A stretch of 64,000 nt of DNA, taken from positions 124,001 through 188,000 of the IMG/VR virus record IMGVR_UViG_3300037087_000760; one strand, given 5' to 3'. Both the position numbers and the translations under genes were made by a program. Of this stretch, positions 31,075 to 46,499 are shown in pieces. Within the stretch, counting starts at the first letter, position 1. Every line of letters starts with the position of its first letter. Below the pieces are notes generated by a model, which had not been told where the DNA came from, ran no database searches, and was given only the letters and a program-made list of their open reading frames with translations.

Positions 31075-31136
31075 GGACAGGTAGCTTAAGAGAGAGCCGT
31101 ATCAACGAGACGGTGGTTTAAACCCACCTCTGTCCA
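31075..31136 (+). ncRNA. 62-nt tRNA-like element lacking a normal anticodon arm
   Basis: Acceptor GGACAGG/TCTGTCC+A, D stem GCT/AGC, T arm GGTGG-TTTAAAC-CCACC; only 14 nt between D and T arms. Confidence 0.6.
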
Positions 31137-31309
31137 CAATATAAAGGGTGCAAAACTTGTTTTAACAATGTTTTTCGGGACGGTTTAGTTAAATCGGTTA
31201 TTCTTAACCAGCCCTTCTTAGAAAATTAGAAGAATCTGATACCCGATGGTGTATAGGATACCCGAAGTACAAGGGATGATCGGTGGCAACACAATCAACT
31301 TCTTTTAAC

Positions 31310-31441
31310 GAGTGTATTAGTGTAACGAAAGCACAGGCTGTTTGATGTTAGAGTAAGTTTTAGACGGCGGTCTTGGTCATTAGATTGACAAAACTGAAAT
31401 ATCGTAGGTCGGATGAGGGTTCAAATCCCTCATACATTCCA
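31310..31441 (+). ncRNA. ~130-nt tRNA-like element with expanded anticodon and variable regions
   Basis: GAGTGTAT/ATACATTC acceptor, D stem GTG/CAC, T arm GAGGG-TTCAAAT-CCCTC, GCTGTTT/AGACGGC stem closing an oversized loop. Confidence 0.55.
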
Positions 31442-31713
31442 AAAGGTGATGTGATGGAATAGTTTTTTCCATCCTGTTTTAAGGAGAGAACATTTGAGGA
31501 TAAAGCGAGCCTACATCACAAACAGGATCACCAAATAAGGTGAGGGAAACAAAGTAGAGTACCTTTTCTTCGGATTGAGGCCTTCGGGCCGAGGGAAATG
31601 ACCTGTTCTCCCTCAACTTTTTTAAAAAACGAAATTAAATTAAACTTTTTGAAAAAAAAGTTCTAAAATAGAAAAAAGAGACTTTATAAGTTAAATATAT
31701 AATAAAAAAACAT

Positions 31714-31784
31714 ATCCAGTAGGAACGTAAGTTCCGTTTTGGGACGCTCAGCGACCCAGAGGGGAAAACTCCCCGCAACTGGAT
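31714..31784 (+). promoter_or_regulatory. Four-way-junction RNA at the 5' end of the rplL-tRNA transcript
   Basis: ATCCAGT/ACTGGAT enclosing GGAAC-GTAA-GTTCC, TGGG..CCCA and GGGG..CCCC hairpins. Confidence 0.5.
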
Positions 31785-31888
31785 AAACTTTTTGAAATGA
31801 TTATGACACAGAACATCCAAAATATGATTATTAATCAGATACCCGGTAAAAATACCGATTGGATGAACTTTGTCTATAACGAATATAG

Positions 31889-31921
31889 AAAAAACCCAAT
31901 CGGAAACGATTGGGTTTTTTT
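31889..31921 (+). terminator. Intrinsic terminator of the attenuator
   Basis: ACCCAATCG-GAAA-CGATTGGGT followed by a T-run. Confidence 0.9.
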
Positions 31922-31952
31922 GTTTTATATGTCCACCATAGTTTTTAACTGG

Positions 31953-31965
31953 TGTTCTTTGAAAT
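31953..31965 (+). promoter_or_regulatory. boxA-like antitermination site
   Basis: TGTTCTTTGAAAT; copies at 32414-32426 (+) and 45905-45917 (-). Confidence 0.6.
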
Positions 31966-32044
31966 AATGATAAATCATATTCGGATTATAAGTTCAAAAC
32001 TGATAATCTGAACATAAAATGTAAATAAAAATAAATTAGAAACT

Positions 32045-32422
32045 ATGGAAGATTTAAAAAAATTAGCGGATGATCTGAGTAATCTCACCGTATTAGAGTG
32101 TTACCAGTTAGCTAAGATAATGAAAGAAGAATACGGAATAGAATCAAATACAAAAATTGTTGGTGTGAATGTATCACCAGTTCCAACTAAGGTAGTTGAA
32201 ATTGAAAAAACAAGTTTTGATGTGATTCTAAAATCAGCAGGAACAACCAACAAACTTGGTGTTATCAAATCCATCAAAGAAATGACAGGACAAAGTTTAT
32301 TGGAAATTAAGAATCTCGTTGATAATGCACCAGCGAAACTAAAAGAAAATGTAAGTAAAGATGAAGCTATGTCTTTACTGAATATTCTGAAAGAATTAGG
32401 TGCAGAAATTGAAGTTCTTTGA
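32045..32422 (+). CDS. rplL: Ribosomal protein bL12 (L7/L12)
   Basis: LSNLTVLE, EKTSFDVILK, KLGVIKSIKEMTG, LVDNAP, LKELGAEIEV. Confidence 0.93.
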   Translation: MEDLKKLADDLSNLTVLECYQLAKIMKEEYGIESNTKIVGVNVSPVPTKVVEIEKTSFDVILKSAGTTNKLGVIKSIKEMTGQSLLEIKNLVDNAPAKLKENVSKDEAMSLLNILKELGAEIEVL

Positions 32423-32449
32423 AAATAATAAAAAATGTAGTAGCGAGTT

Positions 32450-32546
32450 TGAGTGTTACTTCGTAGCTCAACAGTCGAGCATCAATCAGTTAAATTGAAA
32501 GTTGTGGGTGCGATTCCCACCGAACCCGAAAGGGTAATATCACTCA
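32450..32546 (+). ncRNA. tRNA-Asn(GTT)-like RNA with a hairpin inserted in the acceptor stem
   Basis: D arm GCTC/GAGC, loop CA-GTT-AA, T arm GTGGG/CCCAC; acceptor TTCG/CGAA interrupted by CCC-GAAA-GGG then TGAGTG/CACTCA. Confidence 0.65.
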
Positions 32547-32571
32547 ATGATTATCTCTACATTTTTTTAAT

Positions 32572-32649
32572 GGGTGTGTAGCTCAGTAGCGTTAGAGCGC
32601 GACACTGATAATGTCGAGGTCGTAGGTTCAAGTCCTACCATACCCACCA
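32572..32649 (+). tRNA. tRNA-Ile(GAT)
   Basis: Canonical cloverleaf with encoded CCA. Confidence 0.96.
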
Positions 32650-32659
32650 AAAATAACAC

Positions 32660-32741
32660 TGTGTCGTACGCAGCCGATCCTGATAAGATCGAGAACTTGT
32701 AACTGGTGTTGAAAATGTGGGTTCGAATCCCACCGGCACAA
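32660..32741 (+). tRNA. D-armless tRNA-Ile(GAT) with 25-nt variable region
   Basis: TGTGTCG/CGGCACA+A; CGATC-CTGATAA-GATCG; canonical T arm; only 8 nt between acceptor and anticodon stems. Confidence 0.65.
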
Positions 32742-32750
32742 CAAAAATTT

Positions 32751-32822
32751 GGGTTGGTAGTACTAATGAAAAACGGCGGCCTGTTAAGCCGCGAGATGTG
32801 GGTTCAAGTCCCACCCGGCCCT
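32751..32822 (+). tRNA. tRNA-Asn(GTT), weak D arm, U73
   Basis: GCGGC-CTGTTAA-GCCGC; T arm GTGGG-TTCAAGT-CCCAC. Confidence 0.8.
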
Positions 32823-32831
32823 CAATATTAT

Positions 32832-32905
32832 TCCTCAGTAGCTCAGCTGGTTAGAGCATTTGACTGTTAATCAAAGGGTCACAGGTCCAAATCCTGTCTG
32901 GGGAG
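32832..32905 (+). tRNA. tRNA-Asn(GTT)
   Basis: Canonical TCCTCAG/CTGGGGA+G; T loop variant TCCAAAT. Confidence 0.93.
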
Positions 32906-32910
32906 CAAAA

Positions 32911-32987
32911 TTCGGAATGTTTGTCTGTGATTGGGTGCACCACACAGATAATAAAGGAAAAATGTGGTTCAATTCCACCATTCCGAG
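32911..32987 (+). ncRNA. tRNA-like element with acceptor and T arm but a single long hairpin replacing D and anticodon arms
   Basis: TCGGAATG/CATTCCGA; TTGTCTGTG/CACAGATAA; GTGG-TTCAATT-CCAC. Confidence 0.55.
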
Positions 32988-32995
32988 CAAAAATA

Positions 32996-33087
32996 GGGAG
33001 TGTAGCTGATTTGGTTTAGCGGCAGACCGTTAATCTGTGACTGAAAATATTGAAATAAAGTTGGTTCGACCCCATCCTCTCCCGCCA
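32996..33087 (+). tRNA. tRNA-Asn(GTT) with 21-nt AT-rich variable region
   Basis: GCAGA-CCGTTAA-TCTGT; G73 plus CCA encoded; C33. Confidence 0.7.
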
Positions 33088-33095
33088 GTACATAT

Positions 33096-33175
33096 TGTGG
33101 TGTATCCCCCATGTCTTATAAACATGCATTAAAAGGGTAATAGCGTGTATGTGGGTTCGAGTCCCACCACCACAA
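33096..33175 (+). tRNA. D-armless tRNA-Ile(TAT) with 24-nt variable region
   Basis: TGTGGTG/CACCACA+A; CATGT-CTTATAA-ACATG; canonical T arm. Confidence 0.65.
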
Positions 33176-33180
33176 CAAAT

Positions 33181-33252
33181 GGTCGGGTAAGCTAACGGTT
33201 AAACTGGATGTCTTATACACATCTTTTAAGAGTTCGAATCTCTTCCTGACTA
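33181..33252 (+). tRNA. tRNA-Ile(TAT)
   Basis: GATGT-CTTATAC-ACATC; full cloverleaf. Confidence 0.85.
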
Positions 33253-33257
33253 CAAAT

Positions 33258-33333
33258 GGCGAGATAGCTCAGACGGTTTTAGAGCGTCGGATTCATAACC
33301 CGGAGGTCGAGGGTTCAACTCCCTCTCTCGCTA
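33258..33333 (+). tRNA. tRNA-Met(CAT), elongator type
   Basis: Canonical cloverleaf, loop TT-CAT-AA. Confidence 0.93.
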
Positions 33334-33341
33334 CCCAAAAT

Positions 33342-33413
33342 AGTCCTATGGCGTAACGCGAAGCGTGACTCCCCTTGAAGGAGATGGTACTGGTTCGAAT
33401 CCAGTTAGGACTG
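33342..33413 (+). tRNA. tRNA-Gln(TTG), C33 variant
   Basis: AGTCCTA/TAGGACT+G; loop CC-TTG-AA. Confidence 0.8.
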
Positions 33414-33418
33414 CAAAT

Positions 33419-33504
33419 ATCAATGTGAACGGAATGGTTATCGTAGAGGTCTCATAAGCCTTTCAACTCGTTGAGTTGTGGTGGTTCGAATCCACTCATT
33501 GATA
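33419..33504 (+). tRNA. tRNA(CAT), Met or Ile2, with long variable arm
   Basis: GAGGT-CTCATAA-GCCTT; variable hairpin TCAAC/GTTGA. Confidence 0.75.
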
Positions 33505-33510
33505 CAAAAT

Positions 33511-33581
33511 AGTCCTGTGGTGTAACGGTAGCATGCGAGCCTTTGAAGCTTTGGGTACAGATTCGAATTCTGTCAGGACTG
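33511..33581 (+). tRNA. tRNA-Gln(TTG)
   Basis: AGTCCTG/CAGGACT+G; loop CT-TTG-AA. Confidence 0.88.
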
Positions 33582-33587
33582 CAAAAT

Positions 33588-33660
33588 TGTTCTGTCGTAT
33601 AATTGGCAGTACAGCACCCTCTGAAGGTGTATGGTGTAGGTTCGAGTCCTACTGGAACAG
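33588..33660 (+). tRNA. tRNA-Gln(CTG)
   Basis: GCACC-CTCTGAA-GGTGT; G73. Confidence 0.88.
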
Positions 33661-33665
33661 CAAAT

Positions 33666-33737
33666 GGTTCTGTGGTGTAATGCGTAGCACGAGTGATTCT
33701 GAATCACTTGGTTAAGGTTCGAATCCTTACAGAACTA
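33666..33737 (+). tRNA. tRNA-Gln(CTG), A73
   Basis: AGTGA-TTCTGAA-TCACT; full cloverleaf. Confidence 0.85.
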
Positions 33738-33738
33738 C

Positions 33739-34053
33739 ATGAAAAAGGACATAAGAAAGACATTTCGTAAAGAGGTATTCACCAGAGATAAGTATACTTG
33801 TAAAGGATGTGATCAAAAACTTGATGAATCTGAATTGGATGCACATCACATCACTGACCGCAATGAAATGCCAAATGGTGGATATGTGAAAGAGAACGGT
33901 ATAACTCTTTGTAAGAAAGATTGTCATATAAAAGCTGAAAAATTTCATATAACAGATGGAAAAGAATGGGTAGAGGGATTTCATCCAGATGACTTATACG
34001 AGAAGATTGATTCATCTAAGGGGAAGGCTGTTTTAATGTCTCAAATTATTTAG
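33739..34053 (+). CDS. HNH endonuclease
   Basis: RDKYTCKGC, LDAHHI, ENGITLC...CHIKAE. Confidence 0.85.
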   Translation: MKKDIRKTFRKEVFTRDKYTCKGCDQKLDESELDAHHITDRNEMPNGGYVKENGITLCKKDCHIKAEKFHITDGKEWVEGFHPDDLYEKIDSSKGKAVLMSQII

Positions 34054-34419
34054 AATAATGAGAAATAATTTTTTTATTGATTTAATTTTTGTATCTTTGT
34101 ATTGTATAAATTTAAATTATATGAAACAGTTTATTAAACCATCAACATTCAAAGAAAGAAAAAAAAGACCAGATAAAACGAAAGTTGATGAATTTATCGA
34201 AAAGTTCAACAAACTTATAAAAAAGGGAGAATTAGAGGCTAATGATGTACTCAATAAACTCCCATACTTAAATGAATCTGAGTTTAATCTGGCTGTTGCT
34301 ATTGCTCGTGAAAATGGTTGGCAATTAACTCAATTTGAAGATAATTACAACACGACATCTTACCAACTTACAGAAATAAAACTTTCTGTTTAAAAAACAA
34401 TATATAATCATTGTTGTAT

Positions 34420-34490
34420 TGTCCTATGGTGTAATGGCAACACGTGGGTTTTTGGAGCCTTAGTTCTAAGTTCGAATCTTAGTAGGACAA
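34420..34490 (+). tRNA. tRNA-Gln(TTG), solitary
   Basis: TGTCCTA/TAGGACA; loop TT-TTG-GA; weak anticodon stem; AATATATA box at 34399. Confidence 0.75.
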
Positions 34491-34585
34491 CTCTATCACA
34501 ATATACAAGAAGTCAACTACGATGGGAATCGAGGCCAACACGACAAGGATCAAACTTCGTTATAAAGATATTGTGGATTTTTTCT

Positions 34586-34611
34586 CCCAACCCGAAAGGG
34601 TTGGGTTTTTT
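34586..34611 (+). terminator. Intrinsic terminator
   Basis: CCCAACCC-GAAA-GGGTTGGG plus T6. Confidence 0.9.
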
Positions 34612-34837
34612 ATTAAATTAATTATGATTAACATGAGTACAATTTTAGAACAGAGAATCAAGATGGATAACGATGTCTTAAAACGAATAAGACGCGAGAT
34701 CTTAAAGAGTGCCAAGAAAGGTAATTTATATTACTATTGGGAAGTTACTGGATTGAATGAATCCACTATCAGATATATTGTTGATATATTGGAATCTGAG
34801 GGAAAAATGTTTAAGAATAAAGGAAGTTGTAAGATTA

Positions 34838-35830
34838 TCAGGTGGTAATTGGTTGTTTATTACTATATTCATTTTTTAAAATATTCATCATATCTATATG
34901 ATTATGAACAGTTTTTATCTGATAAATATGGTCTAATCCGTATTCCTTTATTATATTATCTATTCTTTCCTTTTCCATTCCATGCGAACTATAATCACTT
35001 ACTCTTCTTCCACCTTCTTCTTTAAAATATAAAATACTTCCCTTTGGGATCTTGAATGATTTATCATTAACAGCCCATTCTCCCTCAGTTTCGAATGTTA
35101 CACTATTTATTTCAAAGGCTTTTGAAAAAAGTTTCCTCAGTTCAGGAAATTCTAATTTGTCTTTTATGTAATCTTCAATTGGTTTCCAATTTTTCCAAGG
35201 ATAATCCTTTGTCATTGGATAATCAACAACATATTCTTTTAGCATTTCCAAAATTATCTTGACAAAATCATCAAGATTATTTATATGTAATTGACCTAAA
35301 TGATAAAGATCATCTATTTTTTCCGACAAAGTATAATGAATATCCTGAATATAATTAATTATACCGTTTTTATCATGATAAGTATCAAATTTAAGTCCAC
35401 CATCTCTTTTTTTCTTAATATTTCTATAAGCTAAATTTTGAAACAATTTATCTAATGCCCCAGTGAAGGTTATATCTCTTTTACGGCCATTTTTATATTC
35501 GATAAATTGTGGATCATTCATTACTAATCTTCTCCAGTACTTAAAATTTTGTTTACAAAAGAAATCTGGATTGAAGTATTCTATGGGTTCTAAGTTTTTA
35601 TTCAATTTCAAGACTTCAGAACCATTCATTATGACAAGCAACTCTCTGATGTCAAACCAGTGTTTTGCTATCCCATAATGGTCTGAAATTCCCTTTAAAT
35701 TCAAAAATTCCATCCTCATTAAAGAATCCCACACTTTATCATCTCCAACTCTTAAAACTAAATAGAACCAATTAGGTTCATTCTTGGGAATCCATTTCTT
35801 TTCGAATATTTGAAAATCAGTAATCATCAA
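34838..35830 (-). CDS. Hypothetical protein with capsid-targeting-like N-terminus
   Basis: MMITDFQIFE; AATATATA box at 35833-35840. Confidence 0.5.
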   Translation of the reverse strand: MMITDFQIFEKKWIPKNEPNWFYLVLRVGDDKVWDSLMRMEFLNLKGISDHYGIAKHWFDIRELLVIMNGSEVLKLNKNLEPIEYFNPDFFCKQNFKYWRRLVMNDPQFIEYKNGRKRDITFTGALDKLFQNLAYRNIKKKRDGGLKFDTYHDKNGIINYIQDIHYTLSEKIDDLYHLGQLHINNLDDFVKIILEMLKEYVVDYPMTKDYPWKNWKPIEDYIKDKLEFPELRKLFSKAFEINSVTFETEGEWAVNDKSFKIPKGSILYFKEEGGRRVSDYSSHGMEKERIDNIIKEYGLDHIYQIKTVHNHIDMMNILKNEYSNKQPITT

Positions 35831-35859
35831 TGTATATATTATTTTTTATGGGCACAAAA

Positions 35860-35879
35860 AAACCGTGAATTCACGGTTT
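35860..35879 (-). terminator. Intrinsic terminator
   Basis: AAACCGTG-AATT-CACGGTTT with U-run on the minus strand. Confidence 0.65.
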
Positions 35880-37236
35880 AATGTTATATTATATTAGAAG
35901 TTAAAAGTTAATACCAGTATAATCAATAAGATCTTTCATATGTTCATTCTTATGTCCTTCGGCGTGTTCCATAGCTTCAAAGATATCTGTCTTACTTCTT
36001 TCAGTTTTGAATCCATTTGTAATTATATCAACATATTTAGGATCTGTCCAACTTTTAAATCCAGTTCCATTGATTGCATATGGGTTGAATCCCCAATGAG
36101 CTTTACACTCAACACCATCTTCAATTGTTGGTTGAAAAAAATCCAAAGATCCATAATTTCCAACAAAAAATCTTTTCTTTGTTAGTTTATCTTCAAACAT
36201 CAATCTATATACATTCTTTAAGTCTATCCAATAATATCCGTAGCAAATTCTATATCCGTATTTTTGGGTTTCGCTGAATTTATTTGGATTGAATGAAACA
36301 TTTATCTTTTTTGGATTTTTTGCTTCTATTACTTTATAGTAATTGTCGAATGTAATTCCAATCTCATGAAATTGACCATCTATTAATCCTGCATAAGATC
36401 TCCAACCCAGACCAAAAGCACAATCATACCAATCCCATTCACGGGCAGGGATATTCTCTTTATAAAGTGGTTGAACGACTAACTTTCCTTTACGGATAGT
36501 CAGTCTTTCAATCGGATTTATTGTTTTCATTTTCTGACGGCTAAAAGAATGATACCGAAAATAATTATAATTACTGCAAAAGGAATCCACAATGGAGAAG
36601 TAACCCACCACCATGACCATGTTATAGCACCTGTTAATTTAAGAATTAGGAATACGATGAACAATACTGTTCCGAAACTCATTCCACCACTTGCTGTTGA
36701 ATTTTTTGACATAATATTAATTTTTAATTGTTATTACTTAATAATTGTTGATAATAATTATATTTGTATTTATCATAGTTATCTTTTGTCATAAAAAGTA
36801 GATATATTGTTCCTTTATTAATATTTTTGATTAACCAACGATATACAAATGTATTTCCTTTTGGTTCTTTCCATATATTATTTTTCTTGTCAAAATTATC
36901 AGCATCCGTAGAATTAATAAAGGCTCTTAGATATTTATTGTCGTAATCTTCAATATAAAGTTTGAAAAGGTCAGTATTATACTCCATCATAATTATATAG
37001 AAGTAACAAAAATCACTCTTAGTAAAATAATATAAATTTGTACTCGATTGAAATTTAATCACTATGGAATAATAACCACTATCTATTTTTTCGGGTTTAC
37101 TAATAGAAATAGAAATTGGTTTCAATTGTTTCAGAATGTTTTTTTTGGTTTCACCTATAAATGATTGTGAAAATACGAAATTGAACATTACAATACCAAC
37201 GAGTGTTAAAAATAGTTTTTTCATTATCATTTGATT

Positions 37237-38103
37237 TTAGATTCCTAATAAATGTTTTGCTAGTGAAACCTCTGGGATATGTTGAAAATAGTACATTACT
37301 CCGAATAAAGATAGAGCCAATGAAAAGAAGAAAAACAAAGCCCATCCAATTTGTTTGTGGGTCATACTTTGATAATTATGTAATTTTTTCCATTCGAACC
37401 AAATTTCGATAACTCCCAGAATCATAAGTAAAGCAAATAATCCTATTTTTAACCAGAAAAACAGAACAGTTGAAGCTAATAGTCCAAATGATAAAATTCC
37501 CAATCCCAACCAAGATTTTAATGAGAAACCAATTGATTTAAATATTCTTCCACCATCCAATGGACTTATTGGTAAAAGGTTGAATAAATTTACAAAGGCC
37601 ATCCATCCGGCTATCGCCGCGAATAATGGATTCAGAGTAATAAAATATACTATTCCAGTAATAATAGTTAGGGCAAATCCCCAAACTGGTCCCATTATAG
37701 CAACAACGAATTCCGTATTTCTTGATTTGAAATCATTCTCAATAACAGCGGCACCACCAATGAATGGTATAAAATAAATGCCCTTAACTTTTAATCCATG
37801 TCTTTTGGCAGCCCATATATGACCAGATTCATGAACAAATAAACAAACCATGATAGCTATGGCGAATGTCCAAGTAGTGAGAAATGCATAACTCACAACA
37901 CTTCCAACGGCCAAACCTATTTTTACCACCTTTGCCCCTTTTAATAATTTTGTTACAACTGGAATGGCTTTAGATCCAATTTTTCCAAGAGCCACAAAAA
38001 ATCCTACAAAGATATTTTTCTTCTTCGGTTTTTCTTCAATCTTTGGTTGATAATTATAAGATGCTTTTACAAAAATTTTTTCTGGTTTTTCTCCAATCAT
38101 CAT
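37237..38103 (-). CDS. Site-2 (M50) intramembrane metalloprotease
   Basis: HESGH, FIPFIGG, MGP, NLLPISPLDGGR. Confidence 0.92.
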   Translation of the reverse strand: MMIGEKPEKIFVKASYNYQPKIEEKPKKKNIFVGFFVALGKIGSKAIPVVTKLLKGAKVVKIGLAVGSVVSYAFLTTWTFAIAIMVCLFVHESGHIWAAKRHGLKVKGIYFIPFIGGAAVIENDFKSRNTEFVVAIMGPVWGFALTIITGIVYFITLNPLFAAIAGWMAFVNLFNLLPISPLDGGRIFKSIGFSLKSWLGLGILSFGLLASTVLFFWLKIGLFALLMILGVIEIWFEWKKLHNYQSMTHKQIGWALFFFFSLALSLFGVMYYFQHIPEVSLAKHLLGI

Positions 38104-38714
38104 AATGTAACTTTTTTGAGGTTATAAATTTTTATCCAGTTTATAAATCCATAAATTGCCGTTCCTGTAAAAATCAATGATTCTATAGCGACAAGGTATA
38201 TTCCACTAAATCCAAACAAAAAAACACAAACTATATCACTTATTATCCAGACTAACCAAGATTCAATGTATTTAAAGGATAGTAGGTTGACACCAAGGAT
38301 ACTGAGAACTGTTACTGTGATGTCTAAGAATAGGTTTGCTGACTGTTTTTCTACTGGAAGTATCTGTCGAACTATGAAATCAATAACAAAAATGGAAATT
38401 ATAGTAATTATACTCCAAATTAGACGCTGTTTATTCGTCAACCATCTTAATCCCTTACCTTCGTTTTTATCTGTTTTTCTCCAATAAAATATGGCAACAA
38501 TACAGATGTAAGTAAAGTAAATTTGTAGAATGGCATTAGCGTAAAGTGAATTATTCCAGAAAAGAAAGAAGAAACACACTTGACCGATAATACTACAAAT
38601 CCAATTCCACCAATTAGCTTTTGTGGCAAATATAACGGAAACAAAATTGAAAATCGATCCGATCAATTCCAAGTAAGTTAAATGATAACCATATATTGTT
38701 AAGGCTGTTTCCAT
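38100..38714 (-). CDS. pnuC: Nicotinamide riboside transporter PnuC
   Basis: Multi-pass membrane protein; LYANAILQ, KYIESWLVWIISD, YGFINW. Confidence 0.88.
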   Translation of the reverse strand: METALTIYGYHLTYLELIGSIFNFVSVIFATKANWWNWICSIIGQVCFFFLFWNNSLYANAILQIYFTYICIVAIFYWRKTDKNEGKGLRWLTNKQRLIWSIITIISIFVIDFIVRQILPVEKQSANLFLDITVTVLSILGVNLLSFKYIESWLVWIISDIVCVFLFGFSGIYLVAIESLIFTGTAIYGFINWIKIYNLKKVTL

Positions 38715-39203
38715 TATATTAAGTTAAATTCATAAATTTTTCTCGTAAAGATTCTTCCATATTTTGTAGAAAAATTTGTTTGTTTTGTAAAACCCATTCA
38801 ACAGCTTCCTGTGATGATGTGAAATAATCCTTTTCGAGTACAAGATCTTTAATATCCATTATCATATATCGTTTAGGTAATGAATATAAAGCTCCATTTC
38901 TATCATAACAATTAGATCCCTGAATATTATAATCTGCCACTAAAATGTGTCTCCACACACCATCATCTGATGGTTTCCCAAAAATTGTATTACTCCATGC
39001 TGGTAAACCAATATTATAAATCTCTAATTCACAAAAATTATTCATTTTTGAATTTTCAGAAAATATAAAATATTGACATAACCCACAAACAATGCCACAA
39101 TAGAAATACTGAAAACAACCAAAAAGGATGAAAGAAATCACCATCTAAATATGATTTTTCACCCGGTATAATCATAAATCCACCAAAGATTGGTATCCAA
39201 AAT

Positions 39204-40001
39204 TTAATTTTTTCCATTTTCTTTTATAAATTCATCAATATGTTTAAGTCCACATTGGGTTTGTAATATATCATTGATATCCATGTTGAAATTGGCATAA
39301 TCCCTATGACTATGATCTTCATTTAATAATTTAGTAATTAATTCAATACAATAATTACCCCATACCCTTTTAATCTCCTTTACTCTCCAACTATCATTGA
39401 GGGCTTTATTATATTCAAATTCTCGTTTTTCTATCAATGAATTGAATTTCTCTGATAAATCATTTTCATCGAACTTGACTTTTTTTGACTGTTCGATTTC
39501 CCAGAGATAATAATATACAGTATCTAAGTGTGATTTTATTATATCAGAAGAAGAAACCCAATTCCATTTCTCTTTTTTCCATTCATGTTGACAATCATTA
39601 CATTTGTTAACTTCATTCGTATCCATTTCTCCGTGCATACTACCACTCATACTACCAGAAAATAAGAAAAAATCTCCTTCCACATGACCATCTACCTGAC
39701 CTTGAACTCTCTTTATTCTATCGTTTACTTTCGAACTACCACATTTGGGACATTTATTATTGTGTCTGTTAGCATAACCTTTGTCCTTTTCCTCTTTCTC
39801 TGAAGCTTCATTTTTACAAATTTCATCGAATGATTGATATTGATTCTTTAAAACAGCCAATCTTTTTTCCTTAATAACAGGATCGACAGATTCGAGTTCT
39901 ATTTTCTGAAAAGATCTTTTAATTGAATGCCAAACACCATACCAATTAGTAGTGAATATAATGAATAATACTACTACAGCAACAATAAAAATATATTCCA
40001 T
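39204..40001 (-). CDS. Membrane-anchored zinc-ribbon protein
   Basis: N-terminal TM helix; CPKCGS and CNDCQHEW. Confidence 0.55.
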   Translation of the reverse strand: MEYIFIVAVVVLFIIFTTNWYGVWHSIKRSFQKIELESVDPVIKEKRLAVLKNQYQSFDEICKNEASEKEEKDKGYANRHNNKCPKCGSSKVNDRIKRVQGQVDGHVEGDFFLFSGSMSGSMHGEMDTNEVNKCNDCQHEWKKEKWNWVSSSDIIKSHLDTVYYYLWEIEQSKKVKFDENDLSEKFNSLIEKREFEYNKALNDSWRVKEIKRVWGNYCIELITKLLNEDHSHRDYANFNMDINDILQTQCGLKHIDEFIKENGKN

Positions 40002-41414
40002 AATTATTTAGTTTATCAATTTTACTAAATGTATGAAAAATAAGTGGAATAAAAAAATTAAATTTGGATAAATTTACCAGTAATCATCCCTTTGCGAATC
40101 CATCTCATTAGGGTAATAGATTTGAATGTTGGAGTAAAATATATATCTTTGTTCTCTTTCTCGTCAAGAGTATCAATTTGTAATTCATAATAAGTATCGT
40201 CTACCTTTATATGATAGTAAACCCATCCATTACAAATATGAGATAATTTAGCTGTTGTTCCGTTTACTATTTCAGTTAGTGTGTGTTTATAGTCCATTAC
40301 TTTTTTGCTAATTTTTTGGTATATTTAATGATATTTTTTGTGTTGTTATTTAATCTTTTAATTTCGTCTGGAGACATTTTAATCAACATCTGTTCTGGTG
40401 TCCATTCGGTAATTCTCCTTATAACCTCGACATCTTCTACTATATAATTATATTTGGGTATTTCCTGTTTTAACATTTCTATTTGATGTTGAATATCTCG
40501 TTCCTTTTTAGCGTCATCACAATCACATTCCCAATATTCATCATAATCATCCCATTTTTTCTTTTCTTCTTCACCACAATATAAGCAAATATGACTTATA
40601 TAACCTATTTCATCGATGAATTTTCTTTCATTTTTTCTTAGCTTTCTCATAAATCTATGTTGTATTTCTCTTTGATTTCTTCTTTGGTATATAGGTGATA
40701 ATTACAATCCTCATATTCTCCCCATTCCAATATACAATGATAAAGTTGAGGTTCGCTCCATCCAGATTTAATAATCTTCAAACCAACTATATTTTGAGTA
40801 TCAATATAAGATCTAACAAGTTGTTCAGAACTTTTTTCAAAATTGAGTTTTATTACATCTAATCCGTCATTCAATCCTGACATACTTCATCCTCCTCTTC
40901 TCCATTATTAAATCCTTTGCCATAAAATGGGCCACTGGTTTCATCGGTTTCGATTTTTTCATCATCTTCTAAACCGTTATTAAAACCTTTACCATAAAAA
41001 GGACCAGATTGTTCATCTACTGGTTTCTTTTTCTTTTTAGGTTCATCTTCTTCGTATTTTCCATACCACATACTATTTATATATGATTTTTCAAGGAAAG
41101 TTTTTTTATTTCACTATTTTTTCGTACTTTTGTAGTCTAATAAATTCTCTTATGAAAATAGATAAGGTAATACATGGATTTACTTTCAGGTACAATGTAT
41201 CTCTTATTCCGAATACGATGAAATGTAAGGTCTATTTCTTATCAAAGGATGAAGAAGTAATCGGAGAAATAAGCCCTGATTTCAAATATATTATCCTACC
41301 CGATACTTACACCAGCCCATATATAACTGATTATGGTAATGTGAAAGTCGGAAAATTAAAGATGAATAAGTTTCAACAGGCAGATGCTCGTGATTACAAT
41401 TCCATAAATACAAA

Positions 41415-41810
41415 ATGAAAATAAGTGATTTTTTAAAAGGACAAGGTGTTTTCAGTAATGAAATTAAAGCCAGATTCCAAAACGGACAAATCAAAATAAA
41501 TGGGGAGTCCGTTAAGGAAGATATTGATTTGAATGTGAAAAAACAAATTCCAGATCCAAAAGTTGATGATATTCCATTTGAAGCTGGAGATTGGATTTTT
41601 CACAATTTAATAACTTCGTTATCAGAGGATAAAAAGAAAAAACTATTTCTCATTACTACCTTATTTGATATTGAAACTCTGTTCTCAGGTGGATGTCAGA
41701 TTAACGACAAACCAGTTGAAGATATTTTACCAGAATTGAATATTATGAAAGGTCATATATTTTTAAAAACTTCCAAAAAACAATGTTTCATCCTAAAACT
41801 TAACAAATAA
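41415..41810 (+). CDS. S4-like RNA-binding protein resembling the TyrRS C-terminal domain
   Basis: SNEIKARFQNGQIKINGE and terminal LKTSKKQCFIL. Confidence 0.45.
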   Translation: MKISDFLKGQGVFSNEIKARFQNGQIKINGESVKEDIDLNVKKQIPDPKVDDIPFEAGDWIFHNLITSLSEDKKKKLFLITTLFDIETLFSGGCQINDKPVEDILPELNIMKGHIFLKTSKKQCFILKLNK

Positions 41811-41818
41811 AAACTAAT

Positions 41819-42808
41819 ATGACTAACAAAAAAGATAAAAAAATAGGACTTGTATTTGGAAAGTTCATGCCCCTTCATAATGGACACATGGCCTTGATTC
41901 GATTTGCACAATCTCAGTGTGATAAACTATATGTATTGTTATGTGAGGCTAATGATGAACCAATATGTGGAAAAATTCGATTAGGATGGTTATTGGACAC
42001 ATTCAAAGATGATTTGAACATAGAAGTGAGAATTACTGATGTTCAATTACCATTAGTTCCCTATTCATCTAAATTAATAGCTAAAATGTGGGCCAAATTT
42101 TTCAAGGAAGAATTTCCTGATGTGAATATTCTATTTACTTCGGAAAGATATGGTGATTTCACAGCAGAATTCATGGGTATAAAACATATACTTTTTGATA
42201 ATGACAGAGAAGAAGTTTTTGTATCAGCCACCAAGATTCGTAATCATCCACTCATTTATTGGGATTATATTCCCGACATTGTAAAACCGTACTTTGTTAA
42301 GAAAATTTGTATTTGTGGAACAGAATCAACGGGAAAAAGTATATTAACCGAAAAACTTGCTAAGAGATTTCATACTAACTTTGTTCCAGAATGGGGTAGA
42401 ACTTTATGTCCGTCTACAACTGAATGTACCATAGATATAATTAAACAAATCGGTAAATCCCACGCTACTGACATTCACAATAAAATACAATTCTCACATA
42501 AATTTTTATTTTCAGATACCGACCTGAATACAACAAAAATGTATTCCTATTTCTTATTCAATGAAATACCGAAATTTGATGATTGGATTGAACAAGAAAA
42601 TAAGTTCGATTTGTACATTTTTCTTGAAAACGATGCCCCTTTTATTCAGGATGGAACACGACTGACAAAAGAAAGAAGGGATGAACTACGAGATTACCAT
42701 TACGACTACCTTATATCTCAAGGATGTAAAGTTGAAATTGTAACTGGTAGTGATTGGGAAATCAGGTATGAAAAAGCTGTCAGAATAATTGAGGAAAATT
42801 TCGGATAA
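41819..42808 (+). CDS. nadR: NadR-type NMN adenylyltransferase / ribosylnicotinamide kinase
   Basis: GKFMPLHNGH, FTSERYG, VSATKIR, GTESTGKS, EWGR, DTD, QDGTR. Confidence 0.92.
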   Translation: MTNKKDKKIGLVFGKFMPLHNGHMALIRFAQSQCDKLYVLLCEANDEPICGKIRLGWLLDTFKDDLNIEVRITDVQLPLVPYSSKLIAKMWAKFFKEEFPDVNILFTSERYGDFTAEFMGIKHILFDNDREEVFVSATKIRNHPLIYWDYIPDIVKPYFVKKICICGTESTGKSILTEKLAKRFHTNFVPEWGRTLCPSTTECTIDIIKQIGKSHATDIHNKIQFSHKFLFSDTDLNTTKMYSYFLFNEIPKFDDWIEQENKFDLYIFLENDAPFIQDGTRLTKERRDELRDYHYDYLISQGCKVEIVTGSDWEIRYEKAVRIIEENFG

Positions 42809-42813
42809 GAATC

Positions 42814-43104
42814 ATGAGAAATTACAAATTAGAAAAATTACAAGCCGGAGAAAGTTTCGTTACCAGTGAAAAAGGTAATTCCATGTCACCAATTATTAAG
42901 TCGGGACAAAAACATAAACTTGTTCCCGCCACTTGGAGAGATGTAGATGTAGATGATATAGTCTATTGTAAAGTCAAAGGAAACTTCTACACTCACCTTG
43001 TAAAAGCAAAAAATGAAGATAAGGGTTGCTTAATAGGTAACAACAAAGGTGGAGTTAACGGATGGACTAAACAAGTCTATGGTAAGGTTGTAAAAATCCT
43101 TTAA
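42814..43104 (+). CDS. S24/S26 peptidase-like small protein
   Basis: KGNSMSPII.SG. Confidence 0.5.
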   Translation: MRNYKLEKLQAGESFVTSEKGNSMSPIIKSGQKHKLVPATWRDVDVDDIVYCKVKGNFYTHLVKAKNEDKGCLIGNNKGGVNGWTKQVYGKVVKIL

Positions 43105-44360
43105 ATATAAATATTCAGAATTTCATTCAGTTTAATTTTGGTTTCCTCATTCAGTGATTTCCCCTTATTTTCATTATACAGAATCATAAAGGAACTTACC
43201 ACTTTATTGAATTTGAAACTATCCGTATAACCAAATACAGTTTCCTTAAACTTTTCAATATCAACAGTTTCCTTACCAGTTCTTGACATCCATTCATCCC
43301 ATTTTTTGAAGAATCTGATGATACCATTGATGTTCTGGTCTGACCATTGACCACCATCGAAATAATGTCCGATGAACATCAGATAAAACCTCAGAACCTT
43401 TGGATCATAGTTATCTGGATTAACAATATTTCCTTTACTTTTGGCCATCTTGATTCCATTATTCAGAATCATTCCCTGATGCACCACTTTTTTAAAAGGT
43501 TCTTCCTCACTGATCATCCCAATATCATACAGGAACATATTAATAAAACGAGCATATATCAGGTGCATGCAAGCGTGTTCACTTCCCCCGATGTACAGAT
43601 CAACTTGTTTATATTTATCTTTACTACACAGTTCATTTTCGTTGTACGAATCACAATAACGGATAAAATAGAAACTACTATCTACGAAAGTATCCAGAGT
43701 ATCAGTCTCACCTTCAATTGGAATAGGACATCCCCAACTTCTTTGTCTACTGACACACCAATCATGTTGATTCTCCAGCCAATCTCTTTGAGAATTGATT
43801 GTTTTCTTTGGGTAATCAATCCAATCCAGATTTTTTATCAGTCGGTCTTTATATTCGGTGATTTTAAAATACCATTGTTCCATTTGACGAATTTCAATGG
43901 TCGTATTACATCTATCACATTTACCATCTTTGACCTGTTCACGAGCCAGAACAGTTCCACAACTTGGACACCAATTTACTTCACCCCAAGCTTTGTAAGC
44001 CAGTCCATGTTCTTTCAGTTTGATAAATATCCATTGTGTCCACTTCTGGTAAGATGGATCTGAAGTAATTACTTTTTCTTCAAAAGAAGTGTCCATTCTT
44101 TCCATCTGTTTACGGAAATTCTCAATGTTTTCATAGGTAACTTCTCTGGGATCTCTATTGACTGATTTGGCGTAATTTTCAGCTGGAAGTCCAAAGGAAT
44201 CATACCCAAACGGTTGAAAAACTTTAACTCCTTTATATCTTTGGTATCGACAATAACTGTCTACGATAGCGTAATTATAATAATGTCCGATGTGCAGTCC
44301 GTTTCCGCTCGGATAAGGAAACATGACAACCACCATTTTTTCATTTTTTATGTCGTTCAT
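43101..44360 (-). CDS. leuS: Minimal leucyl-tRNA synthetase (no CP1 editing domain, no C-terminal domain)
   Basis: MFPYPSG, HIGH, DSFGLPAEN, CPSC/CDRC, DWCVSRQRSWG, ETDTLDTF, GGSEHA, KMAKSKGN. Confidence 0.92.
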   Translation of the reverse strand: MNDIKNEKMVVVMFPYPSGNGLHIGHYYNYAIVDSYCRYQRYKGVKVFQPFGYDSFGLPAENYAKSVNRDPREVTYENIENFRKQMERMDTSFEEKVITSDPSYQKWTQWIFIKLKEHGLAYKAWGEVNWCPSCGTVLAREQVKDGKCDRCNTTIEIRQMEQWYFKITEYKDRLIKNLDWIDYPKKTINSQRDWLENQHDWCVSRQRSWGCPIPIEGETDTLDTFVDSSFYFIRYCDSYNENELCSKDKYKQVDLYIGGSEHACMHLIYARFINMFLYDIGMISEEEPFKKVVHQGMILNNGIKMAKSKGNIVNPDNYDPKVLRFYLMFIGHYFDGGQWSDQNINGIIRFFKKWDEWMSRTGKETVDIEKFKETVFGYTDSFKFNKVVSSFMILYNENKGKSLNEETKIKLNEILNIYI

Positions 44361-45120
44361 TGTCTTTTAATTTGTTTGAGAAATGTTCAATTGAGATATT
44401 ATGTTTTTTGATTGTTTTATAAATAAGACTTCTATTACTTTCGTTATATTCCATATTTAAATTTTTCATAATATCTCTATAAGATTTTGATTTAGAAATA
44501 ATCCCTTTAAAAAGATTAATATCATAATCGAAATAATCATAATTTCTTTTATTTGTGAAATCTTTCCAATCATCTTTTTCAATTATTTCCTTATCTTCGT
44601 ATCTAAAATAACACCCACCAGCCGTCCCTTTCAATTGACAACTAAATTTAATTTGTTGTCTAAAAATACCTGTTTCTCTTTCAGCTCCTCGAAGGCTAAT
44701 GAATTTTTTTAAAGGAGTAAAATTTTTATCATACATTATAATTGATTTCTTATTTGGATTGGATATTTTCATTAGTTTTTTACTTTTATCAGAATGTTTT
44801 TTTCCTGTCCAATCTACACCATCTCCACCATCTGTACTATTCTTCAATCTAAATCCCCAGCATTTAAATTGAGAAATCCAATATCTTTCTAATGAATCAA
44901 TATTATTTTTATCACCGATATCAAGTATTTCTATTATTGGTGAAAGATTTTTATTTTTGAGATATTTTAACCATTTATTTTTTCTTGTCCAAGGTTCTTG
45001 ACGGATACTCCAATTTGACATATGTCCCCTCAATCTTTTTTCTAAATTTTTGGTCTTACCTACATATTTTATAATTTTATCTTCTGGGTCTGTTAATGTA
45101 TAAATATAAAATTCCATCAT
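44341..45120 (-). mobile_element. Free-standing GIY-YIG homing endonuclease with NUMOD-type DNA-binding motifs
   Basis: YIYTL...YVGKT...R...H, LERYWI, NSTDGGDG, GKKHSDKSK, FISLRGAERETG. Confidence 0.88.
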
Positions 45121-45169
45121 AGATTTTTATTTCTATATATAAAAATTTATGTGTAATGTTTCATAGTTG

Positions 45170-45243
45170 TAACCCCACCCGGACTTGAACCGAGATATTT
45201 AGTTTCTAAAACTAACGCCGCTAACCAATTAGGCCATGGGGTC
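45170..45243 (-). tRNA. tRNA-Leu(TAG) with short variable loop
   Basis: TTAGT-TTTAGAA-ACTAA; 4-nt variable loop; A73. Confidence 0.8.
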
Positions 45244-45253
45244 ATTATTTTAG

Positions 45254-45327
45254 TAGTTCTGTTCGGACTTGAACCGAAATATTTGGTTTTTGAAACCAAC
45301 GCCGCTAACCAATTAGGCCACAGAACC
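45254..45327 (-). tRNA. tRNA-Leu(CAA) with short variable loop
   Basis: TTGGT-TTCAAAA-ACCAA; near-copy of the neighbouring D arm; A73. Confidence 0.8.
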
Positions 45328-45332
45328 TTTTG

Positions 45333-45417
45333 TATCGATGGTGGGACTCGAACCCACACCCTCGTAATGAGGAACGGCTTCTGAGGCCGTCGCGTCTACC
45401 AATTCCGCCACACCGAC
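45333..45417 (-). tRNA. tRNA-Leu(CAG), long arm
   Basis: Canonical Leu D arm GCG-GAATTGGTAGA-CGC; CT-CAG-AA. Confidence 0.94.
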
Positions 45418-45469
45418 AAATTTCAAATATTTACCAGTTTTTTGAAAAACTGTTCAAAATTTGATTTTG

Positions 45470-45543
45470 TAGCACCTGTCGGATTCGAACCGACAAACTT
45501 GGATTTTAAGACCAATATGGTTGCTCTATTACATCAAGGTGCC
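45470..45543 (-). tRNA. tRNA-Leu(TAA) with short variable loop
   Basis: TTGGT-CTTAAAA-TCCAA; A73. Confidence 0.75.
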
Positions 45544-45548
45544 ATTTG

Positions 45549-45632
45549 TAGCCTCTGTGGGAATCGAACCCACACGGTCTTTCGACCACTGGATTTTGAG
45601 TCCAGAGCGTCTACCAATTCCGCCAAGAGGCC
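45549..45632 (-). tRNA. tRNA-Leu(CAA), long arm
   Basis: Canonical cloverleaf, CT-CAA-AA. Confidence 0.95.
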
Positions 45633-45637
45633 ATTTG

Positions 45638-45722
45638 TGGGAGTTGATGGAGTTGCACCACCCGAGCCCTGAGGACAACAGATTTACAGTCTGCCCCGCT
45701 ACTACTTACGGAATAAACTCCC
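45638..45722 (-). tRNA. tRNA-Tyr(GTA), long arm
   Basis: GCAGA-CTGTAAA-TCTGT; atypical T loop TGCAACT. Confidence 0.88.
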
Positions 45723-45726
45723 AAAG

Positions 45727-45811
45727 TGACCAAGGTGGGATTCGAACCCACACGGGCGTAAAGCCCAACGGATTTTAAGTCCGTCGCGTCTACCAGTTCC
45801 GCCACAAGGCC
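45727..45811 (-). tRNA. tRNA-Leu(TAA), long arm
   Basis: CT-TAA-AA; two T-T mismatches in acceptor stem. Confidence 0.88.
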
Positions 45812-45819
45812 AATTTCAG

Positions 45820-45901
45820 TGTCCATAGGGGGACTCGAACCCCCACGCCTTTCGACAATAGTTTCTTAGGCTATCGCGTCTACCAGTTCCGCCATACGGA
45901 C
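45820..45901 (-). tRNA. tRNA-Leu(AAG), long arm
   Basis: ATAGC-CTAAGAA-ACTAT; canonical Leu D arm. Confidence 0.88.
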
Positions 45902-45918
45902 AATTTCAAAGAACTCAG

Positions 45919-45990
45919 TGGGAATAGAAGGATTCGAACCTACAAATCACGATTTTACAGACCGCTGAGCGACCACTGCTCAATATTCCC
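45919..45990 (-). tRNA. tRNA-Tyr(GTA) with short variable loop
   Basis: GGGAATA/TATTCCC+A; CT-GTA-AA; 5-nt variable loop. Confidence 0.85.
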
Positions 45991-45995
45991 GTTTG

Positions 45996-46068
45996 TGGAA
46001 GTACAAGGATTCGAACCTCGAATACACGGTGTTACAAGCCGCTGAGCGACCATCCGCTCACTACTTCC
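45996..46068 (-). tRNA. tRNA-Tyr(GTA) with short variable loop
   Basis: GGAAGTA/TACTTCC+A; TT-GTA-AC. Confidence 0.85.
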
Positions 46069-46069
46069 T

Positions 46070-46225
46070 TGGTGGGGGTGGATGGAATTTCACACATCGG
46101 ATGATAAGTTTACAGCTTACGAAGTAACTGTTTTACATCACTACAATTGATTGGCCTTCGATAAAGGAAACAGTCCAATTCAGAATCCTTATCAATCGAG
46201 ATACTTTGGTACAGTAATCACCCCC
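46070..46225 (-). ncRNA. tRNA-Tyr(GTA)-like RNA with ~80-nt structured insertion in the D loop
   Basis: GGGGGTG/CACCCCC+ACCA; ACTGT/ACAGT D stem; GTAAG-CTGTAAA-CTTAT; degenerate T arm. Confidence 0.65.
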
Positions 46226-46257
46226 TTTTATTTTCAATATGTTTAAGAACATGCAAC

Positions 46258-46289
46258 AAAAAACCCATCACTTTTTCAAGGACGGGTCT
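46258..46289 (-). terminator. Intrinsic terminator of the Leu/Tyr attenuator
   Basis: GACCCGTC-CTTGAAAAAGT-GATGGGTT followed by a T-run. Confidence 0.8.
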
Positions 46290-46316
46290 TTCTGATTCTA
46301 TGATAATATTTAAAGT

Positions 46317-46403
46317 TTATCTTTCAGCAATACTAACCCATCCTCGATTTTGATAGAGGTATAAATACAAATAATATAGGTTAATATTTACTCTGTTTTT
46401 CAT
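46317..46403 (-). promoter_or_regulatory. Attenuator leader peptide MKNRVNINLYYLYLYLYQNRGWVSIAER
   Basis: Codons CTA TAT TAT TTG TAT TTA TAC CTC TAT; 13-bp 1:2 stem, 10-bp 2:3 antiterminator, stop codon before segment 3. Confidence 0.85.
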
Positions 46404-46467
46404 AACTTTTATTCTTTCTGAAAATTATATATTAAATAATTTTAGTCTGTTTTTTCTATTTATACGA

Positions 46468-46475
46468 CAAAGGTA
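46468..46475 (-). promoter_or_regulatory. Bacteroidota sigma70-type -7 box (TAnnTTTG)
   Basis: TACCTTTG upstream of the leader; similar boxes just upstream of pncB, rnpB, the 26906 ORF and the 34121 and 41152 starts. Confidence 0.6.
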
Positions 46476-46499
46476 TGTAAAAGTTTTAAAATAAAAAAA

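Follow-up and report, generated by a model that had tools for sequence, protein, structure and literature searches.

How does a phage that carries many tRNA genes control their supply? To our knowledge, the control of large phage tRNA sets is essentially unknown; tRNA genes are generally thought to be controlled by their promoters. The question is posed by a 64-kb stretch of DNA (positions 124001–188000 of the 211-kb IMG/VR contig 3300037087_000760; hereafter, the window) that contains two tRNA arrays sorted by amino acid, one on each strand, and, upstream of each, a short leader open reading frame (ORF) rich in codons for those same amino acids. The analysis of these leaders, of the hairpins that overlap them and of equivalent units in related large phages, which was computational throughout (sequence, folding and statistics), indicates that the arrays are most probably under ribosome-mediated transcription attenuation, an arrangement that would impose negative feedback on tRNA supply.

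Leader composition and tRNA array content

The plus-strand array (32460–33738, +) comprises a degenerate tRNA gene, Ile-GAT, three copies of Asn-GTT, Ile-TAT, two of Met-CAT, two of Gln-TTG and two of Gln-CTG; an additional Gln-TTG gene is found beyond it, at 34420 (+). The tRNA genes were called using ARAGORN and Rfam, with relaxed ARAGORN (introns allowed) reserved for weak cases, and the two programs agree on this array, upholding the claim of an earlier, sequence-only reading of this DNA that the cluster is limited to Asn, Ile, Met and Gln. The leader ORF of this unit begins with ATG and occupies 31797–31967 (+). Its control codons (31797–31841) specify Ile, Asn, Met or Gln at 14 of the first 15 residues, and make use of all three Ile codons (ATT, ATC, ATA), both Gln codons (CAA, CAG) and both Asn codons (AAT, AAC). 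No other 15-mer in the six-frame translation of the whole window was as rich in Ile, Asn, Met and Gln as this run, which is upstream of the matching array and shares its strand.

The minus-strand array (45169–46067, –; ARAGORN and Rfam) comprises a Tyr-GTA-like gene, Tyr-GTA, and Leu genes with the anticodons AAG, TAA, CAA, TAA, CAG, CAA and TAG. The first of these, the Tyr-GTA-like gene, is weak (25.6 bits) and was called by relaxed ARAGORN. The proposal that the recognisable tRNAs of a cluster spanning 45170–46225 are all Leu or Tyr held for the sorting but failed for positions 46225–46070 as part of the cluster. What lies there, past the terminator and ahead of the first tRNA, is a 156-nucleotide (nt) element (46070–46225, –). 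Read from the sequence, it ends in ACCA and has an acceptor-like stem of 7 bp, but it was not called as a tRNA by Rfam or by ARAGORN, introns allowed. The leader ORF of this unit (46317–46403, –; 28 amino acids) has its control codons at 46379–46353, encoding LYYLYLYLY, with CTA, TTG, TTA and CTC as the Leu codons. It contains the only 9-mer in the six-frame translation of the window in which at least eight of nine residues are Leu or Tyr, and it too is upstream of, and on the same strand as, the matching Leu/Tyr array. The leaders are thus unique compositional maxima of the window, in agreement with the view that they are made of the amino acids of their arrays.

A megablast search of GenBank phages with window positions 30000–47000 returned tRNA-sized matches only, and relatives were therefore sought through proteins and motifs. 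Four routes were followed, based on proteins resembling the leucyl-tRNA synthetase (LeuRS) and ribosomal protein L7/L12 of the window, on GenBank huge phages, on the terminator scaffold and on a promoter-like motif found ahead of the leaders. Together these provided at least 28 non-redundant units from related large phages, LR756501 among them; in each, a promoter motif, a leader and a terminator precede a tRNA array. To avoid circularity, leaders were also chosen by rules blind to composition: one took the terminator closest to a tRNA group on its upstream side, up to 900 nt away; the other, the first ORF of at least 15 amino acids on the 3′ side of the promoter motif. The sample of 28 units was formed by applying the second rule, with ATG as the start codon and a minimum of 15 codons, and pooling the results with the units found earlier. 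Leader candidates at position 2743 of locus L006 and in Lys-rich ORFs of L007 and L009 have no terminator and were dropped as chance or uncertain.

The sequence-only reading had staked its proposal on a correlation between leaders and clusters in relatives. Such a correlation was found. In a crude matrix of upstream 8-mers against 31 cluster sets, the observed sum was reached in none of 20,000 permutations. Using 12 curated leaders, the leader's own set ranked first in 11, the observed value being reached in none of 200,000 permutations. For the 28 units, the summed z was 106.5, compared with 1.9 ± 10.5 when the arrays were permuted (0/200,000); the unit's own array set ranked first in 17 and among the top three in 23. 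When the amino acids occurring at least twice in leader residues 2–25 were set against the tRNAs of the array, the 2 × 2 table for the 28 units was 95/73/18/374, giving an odds ratio of 27 (P = 3 × 10–42). The match extends to the codon, 88 of 132 informative leader codons being readable by the anticodons of the array against 68.9 expected (z = 3.6); at locus L129, for example, the Arg codons CGA and AGG of the leader occur alongside Arg-ACG and Arg-CCT tRNAs.

A blind prediction was also made. The control run NFNIYEEIEN, from a leader located at the edge of loci L048 and L054, predicts tRNAs for Asn, Phe, Ile, Tyr and Glu; the downstream DNA (L063) was fetched afterwards. It proved to contain Glu-CTC, Glu-TTC, an Ile-TAT-like gene, three ORFs, a weak Tyr-GTA-like gene, Ile-GAT, Asp and Asn. 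Four of the five amino acids were recovered, Phe being missing and Asp extra. The Ile codons of the leader are ATA, and an Ile-TAT-like tRNA is among those downstream.

In the closest relative, L002, both leaders of the window are present with identical control codons and differing flanking codons. Distant relatives have the same layout with other amino-acid sets. The control run LSLSLSLSLSLS, written with seven different codons, precedes an array for Leu and Ser; a leader rich in Leu, Val and Cys precedes one for Cys, Val and Leu; SSSRS precedes Ser, Arg and Ser; MEAMLWSVAEAVEVDDL precedes Ala, Glu, Leu, Val, Trp, Asp and Met; KHSKHSSFSSKWF precedes Trp, His, Phe, Ser and Lys; QPQPQHQHQ precedes Pro, Pro, Gln and His; and leader families rich in Thr, Ala, Pro, Val and Gly precede arrays for Pro, Ala, Thr, Gly and Val. 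L129, on the contig of the window but outside the window, is a third unit complete with promoter motif, leader and terminator. Pro, Arg, Glu, Thr, Val and Ala abound in its control run, and the array that follows holds four Glu tRNAs, Arg-ACG, Pro, Arg-CCT, Thr, Ala and Val. Phage LR756501 (735 kb, GenBank), assigned to the Mahaphage clade, with Bacteroidetes as its predicted host (PMC7162821), has three units with the motif and terminator scaffold of the window. One has an all-Leu leader that uses all six Leu codons and another a Met/Gln leader. The third precedes an L7/L12 gene and is homologous to the plus-strand leader of the window; it encodes YNDYCIND, and the array that follows L7/L12 contains Ile, Cys, Asp, Asn and Tyr. 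Since the L7/L12-linked leader specifies Ile, Asn, Met and Gln in the window and YNDYCIND in LR756501, the control codons vary with the array on a scaffold that is itself conserved. At L049 (7560–7800, –), comparison with L042 (2880–3110, +) revealed a natural variant of the Ala/Glu/Leu/Val/Trp/Asp/Met leader, which has lost most of its control run and its frame to a 32-nt deletion but retains an intact terminator.

Runs such as LYYLYLYLY or LSLSLS... resemble low-complexity sequence and might on this account be remnants of repeats or of duplications close to tRNA genes; alternatively, the leader peptides might act as small proteins. In neither case would they have a part in regulation. The codons, however, are mixed. 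The diversity of synonymous codons to which the sequence-only reading had drawn attention is real, although over the 12 curated leaders it does not exceed the prediction from codon usage (77 different codons, where 70 would be expected); the one exception is the all-Leu leader of LR756501, with all six Leu codons in use (P = 0.0013). Runs of mixed synonymous codons are not DNA repeats. Within leader families, moreover, the order of the residues is shuffled and the composition kept, as is usual for attenuator leaders but not for folded peptides; no protein family was found for the leader peptides, none being expected at such a length. We consider this explanation hardly credible.

Predicted attenuator anatomy and the signals around it

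Both window units have the parts of a leader-peptide attenuator: a codon-enriched ORF, an intrinsic terminator (regions 3 and 4) before the genes, a 2:3 pairing exclusive with 3:4, and a 1:2 hairpin over the control codons, present in the minimum-free-energy folds of both leaders. In the minus-strand unit, region 1 (46376–46388, –) would pair with region 2 (46335–46347, –) in the untranslated transcript, and regions 3 and 4 form the terminator hairpin with its U-tract (46254–46289, –); the minimum-free-energy fold consists of 1:2 plus 3:4 (z = –3.5). Region 2 supplies the 5′ arm of the antiterminator and falls within the 3′-terminal part of the leader ORF, which has its stop codon (TAA) at 46319–46317. 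A ribosome finishing the leader would therefore mask region 2 and let the terminator form; the stop codon is placed for this purpose in the minus-strand unit, and the predicted arrangement is that of the classical attenuator. In the plus-strand unit, region 1 (CATCCAA, 31814–31820, +) is the partner of region 2 (CCGATTGGATG, 31855–31865, +) in the minimum-free-energy fold, which again consists of 1:2 plus 3:4 (z = –6.3). Regions 3 and 4 (31889–31925, +) form a terminator hairpin of –20.4 to –20.6 kcal/mol, with a 15-bp stem and a T7 tract.

To mimic a stalled ribosome, the leaders were folded with region 1 and the control codons masked and region 4 withheld. Under these conditions, 2:3 antiterminators appeared at –14.1 kcal/mol in the plus-strand unit and at –21.5 kcal/mol (a 13-bp helix) in the minus-strand unit, energies that were reached by none of 200 shuffles of the intervening sequence. 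Folds, masked folds and shuffles thus agree with the earlier description of leaders overlapped by 1:2, 2:3 and 3:4 hairpins. Comparison with L002 showed regions 2, 3 and 4 to change together, with both helices kept. The changes in region 2 of the minus-strand unit are compensatory, and its control run is 100% conserved between flanks that vary (alignment A2).

When one leader family was aligned with MAFFT (A3), region 2 did not fall into common columns, and an alignment-free test was therefore used, in which the terminator arms of the 28 units were swapped. The 5′ arm of a unit's own terminator (region 3) paired with its own leader better than did the arms of other units (0/100,000 permutations). 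In 26 of the 28, the segment that pairs with region 3 ends between 0 and 31 nt before the leader stop codon, or 2 nt past it. The two exceptions are the plus-strand leader of the window and L036_CIDNY; in the latter the automated region 3 call failed, and the stop codon lies inside region 2.

These findings bear on the possibility that the hairpin and U-tract are a constitutive terminator or insulator, that the arrays have promoters of their own and that the short ORFs are untranslated or irrelevant. There is room for a promoter past each terminator in the window (190 and 655 nt), and a GTTCTTTGAAA-like motif follows some terminators. This motif was observed 25–35 nt past the U-tract at 31954–31966 (+) and 46250–46229 (–), and also in L002, L036, L046 and L048; it marks a subset only, four of 26 units among the matches listed in the motif scan. 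In many relatives, by contrast, the first tRNA begins 20–40 nt past the U-tract, a gap too short for a separate promoter, which makes the arrays reachable only through the terminator. An insulator would also leave the match in composition unexplained, and the pairing of the antiterminator is specific to each unit. It is very improbable that the hairpins are mere insulators.

Upstream of the leaders, the motif GAAAAAANNGAC-N(7–13)-ATATATA has exactly two matches in the 64 kb of the window, none being expected by chance, and each is directly upstream of a leader (31671–31701, +, and 46426–46456, –). It is also found ahead of all three leaders of LR756501. We take it to be a promoter particular to this lineage of phages. 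A Bacteroidota-type TAnnTTTG sequence occurs just upstream of the minus-strand copy (46475–46468); as a common element, this –7 motif was rejected, being upstream of only six of 15 leaders.

The same promoter-like motif precedes an ordinary protein gene in L052, so that the timing of expression could be set by the promoter. This would suit translation-dependent switches that report general translational capacity or the stage of infection, the codon match then being a by-product, for instance of the leader itself being decoded by phage tRNAs. The plus-strand leader of the window, which crosses its terminator, likewise fits a coupling type of attenuation (as in pyrBI) better than a stalling type. 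A general sensor, however, has no need to track the array by amino acid or by codon, and nearly all units have the stop codon beside region 2, as in a switch that senses stalling. Sensing of general capacity alone is accordingly judged improbable.

The plus-strand unit differs from its relatives in two ways. First, its ORF extends across the terminator. In L002 and LR756501 the homologous ORF ends at a TGA inside GATTGGATGA, equivalent to window positions 31863–31865, where the TGA is out of frame; the cause is a 1-nt insertion relative to these two relatives, at 31842–31844, where the window has CCC and L002 has CC (alignment A1). The hairpins and control codons that the sequence-only reading described are present, but a leader ORF running through its own terminator was not part of that picture, and the stop codon is not placed to bring a ribosome over region 2. 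The extra C may be an assembly error in a C run or a real change. Second, a 73-nt insertion with inverted ends (ATCCAGT/ACTGGAT) occupies the 5′ untranslated region (31713–31785, +), between the promoter motif and the leader. It adopts a four-way, cloverleaf-like fold (–35.8 kcal/mol, z = –6.5), is absent from the orthologous sites of L002 and L036 (alignment A1) as well as of LR756501, and has no match among GenBank phages.

In this unit alone, therefore, the attenuator might be disabled or rewired by the frameshift across the terminator and the structured insertion. Both changes are apparent with respect to L002 and LR756501, and the unit is the one genuine outlier of the 28 in the spacing of region 2 and stop codon. 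Yet the control codons, regions 1–4 and the U-tract are all intact, the additional base lies in a C run where it could be an assembly error, and a stall in the control run would still free region 2. Disablement or rewiring is, on balance, somewhat unlikely.

Proposed operation and relation to known systems

Transcription would begin at the conserved promoter-like motif and proceed into the short leader ORF, with its codons read by the downstream tRNAs. If any matching charged tRNA were scarce, the ribosome would stall in the control run and region 2 would be free to pair with region 3; once this antiterminator had formed, RNA polymerase would continue into the tRNA genes and, in the window, perhaps also into the L7/L12 gene of the plus-strand unit and the mini-LeuRS gene of the minus-strand unit. 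When decoding is fast, the ribosome would instead reach the leader stop, at or just after region 2, which would be masked; the 3:4 terminator would then form and transcription would end. The products of the operon, once charged, would in this way close it, a negative feedback. A single leader samples several amino acids and isoacceptors, so that the switch would act as an OR gate. We infer that read-through responds to the level of charged tRNA, and that candidates for the natural trigger are starvation, loss or decay of host tRNA, anticodon nucleases and codon-usage mismatch.

Several points weigh against attenuation of this kind. Termination, read-through and translation of the leader are predictions only, and a shortage caused by amino-acid starvation would not be relieved by extra tRNA. 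The promoter-like motif fits neither the sigma-70 nor the Bacteroidota consensus; a polymerase starting there may not obey hairpin-plus-U terminators or be coupled to ribosomes. The attenuators of the window stand at some distance from their arrays, that of the minus strand about 190 nt upstream of its first tRNA and that of the plus strand 655 nt and one protein gene upstream. The frameshift of the plus-strand unit may mean that it works in another way or is damaged, or may itself be an assembly error. Finally, eight of 22 tRNA groups in related loci, among them Met/His/Trp/Phe and Lys groups, have no terminator or leader within 900 nt. A terminator was found within that distance for the other 14, with a matching leader in 12. 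The Met/His/Trp/Phe clusters of L007, L009 and L030 yielded no leader, nor did the Lys, Glu and Met/Ile clusters of LR756501, and none was found anywhere in LR756511. Control of tRNA groups by leader and terminator is thus common but not universal.

A wider proposal is that a large, probably Bacteroidota-infecting phage lineage operates a codon-resolved tRNA supply, in which the sorted operons are OR-gate sensors de-repressed by any limiting isoacceptor; we put it forward tentatively, as possible rather than probable. If it is correct, the phage would make good, on demand, any host tRNAs removed by host shut-off or cleaved by anticodon-nuclease defence systems, and transcription–translation coupling would persist during infection by these phages. 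Why phages carry tRNAs would become a matter for experiment, namely which shortage opens which switch. An attenuator before tRNA genes would form a direct feedback loop from decoding to tRNA synthesis, and matched leaders would explain why the tRNAs of these phages are sorted by amino acid. The leader predicts the array, a readable code of use in annotation, and the units, as compact, modular, amino-acid-specific sensors, might be reused as reporters of charged tRNA.

By their predicted anatomy, the phage units are leader-peptide attenuators. They share with the trp, his, leu, thr, ilvGMEDA, ilvBN and pheA attenuators an ORF with control codons, the 1:2, 2:3 and 3:4 hairpins, an intrinsic terminator and, in 26 of the 28 units, a stop codon so placed that a terminating ribosome would mask region 2; the ilv and thr leaders, like those of the phages, are also multi-amino-acid. 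Unlike the attenuators of biosynthetic operons, however, the phage units regulate tRNAs, the sensed molecule and the product being of the same species; their leaders cover as many as seven amino acids and more than one isoacceptor; and they are located in phage genomes, behind a phage-lineage promoter motif and outside the curated Rfam leader families. In Rfam searches, no leader family (Thr_leader, Leu_leader, His_leader, Trp_leader and others) reached gathering level in the window units, the best score being that of Thr_leader (24.3 bits against 55), and the T-box covariance model had no match. The units accordingly belong to no curated Rfam leader family and are not T-boxes. When 185,579 bacterial and archaeal genomes were scanned for the scaffold from region 2 to the terminator, the single match was in a Bacteroidota metagenome-assembled genome and had no tRNA nearby, so that no cellular counterpart with the exact scaffold pattern was found among the genomes scanned.

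In Escherichia coli pheST, the pheM leader attenuates synthetase genes only, without tRNA genes, and senses one amino acid. It is nonetheless a case of attenuation applied to a gene of the translation apparatus, and a Leu/Tyr leader that may control a mini-LeuRS gene would be its direct analogue. T-box riboswitches similarly tie the charging state of a specific tRNA to terminator read-through ahead of translation-related genes, but they bind uncharged tRNA through RNA–RNA contacts and involve neither ribosome nor ORF, whereas the phage units would sense through decoding. In attenuation of the pyrBI type, the leader ORF passes through the terminator and a coupled ribosome blocks the hairpin; the plus-strand leader of the window, as sequenced, does overlap its terminator. 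The leaders of relatives, in contrast, stop before it, an antiterminator is present, and the control codons point to the sensing of tRNA and not of a nucleotide. Arrays of many tRNAs occur likewise in other large phages (of the T4/T5 type, and in huge phages, beside synthetases and ribosomal proteins such as L7/L12; PMC7162821). The words 'attenuat' and 'leader' are absent from the text of that report (Al-Shayeb et al. 2020; PMC7162821), and a search of the full-text literature returned no description of amino-acid-sorted tRNA arrays or of their gating by matched leaders. What is new is that tRNAs are the regulated genes, that the leaders sample many amino acids and isoacceptors, and that the whole forms a modular, evolving cassette in large phages.

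Neighbouring genes and other features of the window

The gene for ribosomal protein L7/L12 (32045–32422, +) lies between the plus-strand attenuator and its array, and was identified by Pfam PF00542 and PF16320 and by TIGR00855 (93.9 bits, above cutoff). Behind the minus-strand array, a gene at 43101–44360 (–) encodes a mini leucyl-tRNA synthetase of 419 amino acids, comprising the catalytic core only. Its score against leuS_bact (381 bits) is below the cutoff for the full-length enzyme (548), and its alignments to LeuRS structures in the PDB (chain residues about 34–227 plus a second stretch) are split around the CP1 editing domain; it lacks both this domain and the C-terminal tRNA-binding domain, and is thus not a full-length LeuRS. 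It is kept, with 62–75% identity, in 32 other large-phage contigs. A GIY-YIG endonuclease gene (44341–45120, –; Pfam PF01541) lies directly after the Leu array, between it and the LeuRS gene. Since both genes are on the strand of the array, and no terminator-like site is listed on that strand from 45169 to 43101, they are probably co-transcribed with it, and the Leu/Tyr unit may also control the mini-LeuRS gene. A LeuRS-like gene is directly behind a Leu-containing array with a Leu-containing leader in L006, L022 and L026 as well.

Three of the seven tRNA-Leu genes and the tRNA-Tyr gene of the minus-strand array are only 73–75 nt long (45169–45243, 45253–45327, 45469–45543 and 45918–45990, –), and hence lack the long variable arm normal for Leu and Tyr tRNAs of bacteria, an absence possibly connected with the adjoining mini-LeuRS. 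An HNH endonuclease gene (33739–34053, +) follows immediately after the plus-strand array. It and the GIY-YIG gene, which flank the tRNA arrays, look like homing-type nucleases.

Upstream of the plus-strand unit, 30494–31700 (+) is a region of 1.2 kb with raised G+C and without a convincing ORF. A tRNA-like gene with an insert of about 37 nt was noted at 31311–31440 (+); this is a weak call (Rfam tRNA, 30.5 bits; a fragment of the transfer-messenger RNA model, E = 9 × 10–5), and the anticodon given by relaxed ARAGORN, TTA, would make it an ochre suppressor. A lone tRNA-Leu(TAA) gene (30378–30493, +) has no leader, unlike the arrays, and lies directly behind an 11/12 match to a sigma-70-type promoter (TTGAAA, 18 nt, TATAAT).

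Elsewhere in the window, genes related to nicotinamide adenine dinucleotide (NAD) at 11396–12616, 22079–23851, 38100–38714 and 41819–42808 encode a nicotinate phosphoribosyltransferase (NAPRTase), a glutamine-dependent NAD synthase, a PnuC-type nicotinamide mononucleotide transporter and a NadR-like cytidylyltransferase plus AAA_28 protein; they may constitute an NAD-replenishing phage module. A TonB-dependent receptor with plug and beta-barrel and a signal-peptide-like N-terminus is encoded at 27758–29890 (+), and its presence on a phage contig fits a Bacteroidota host.

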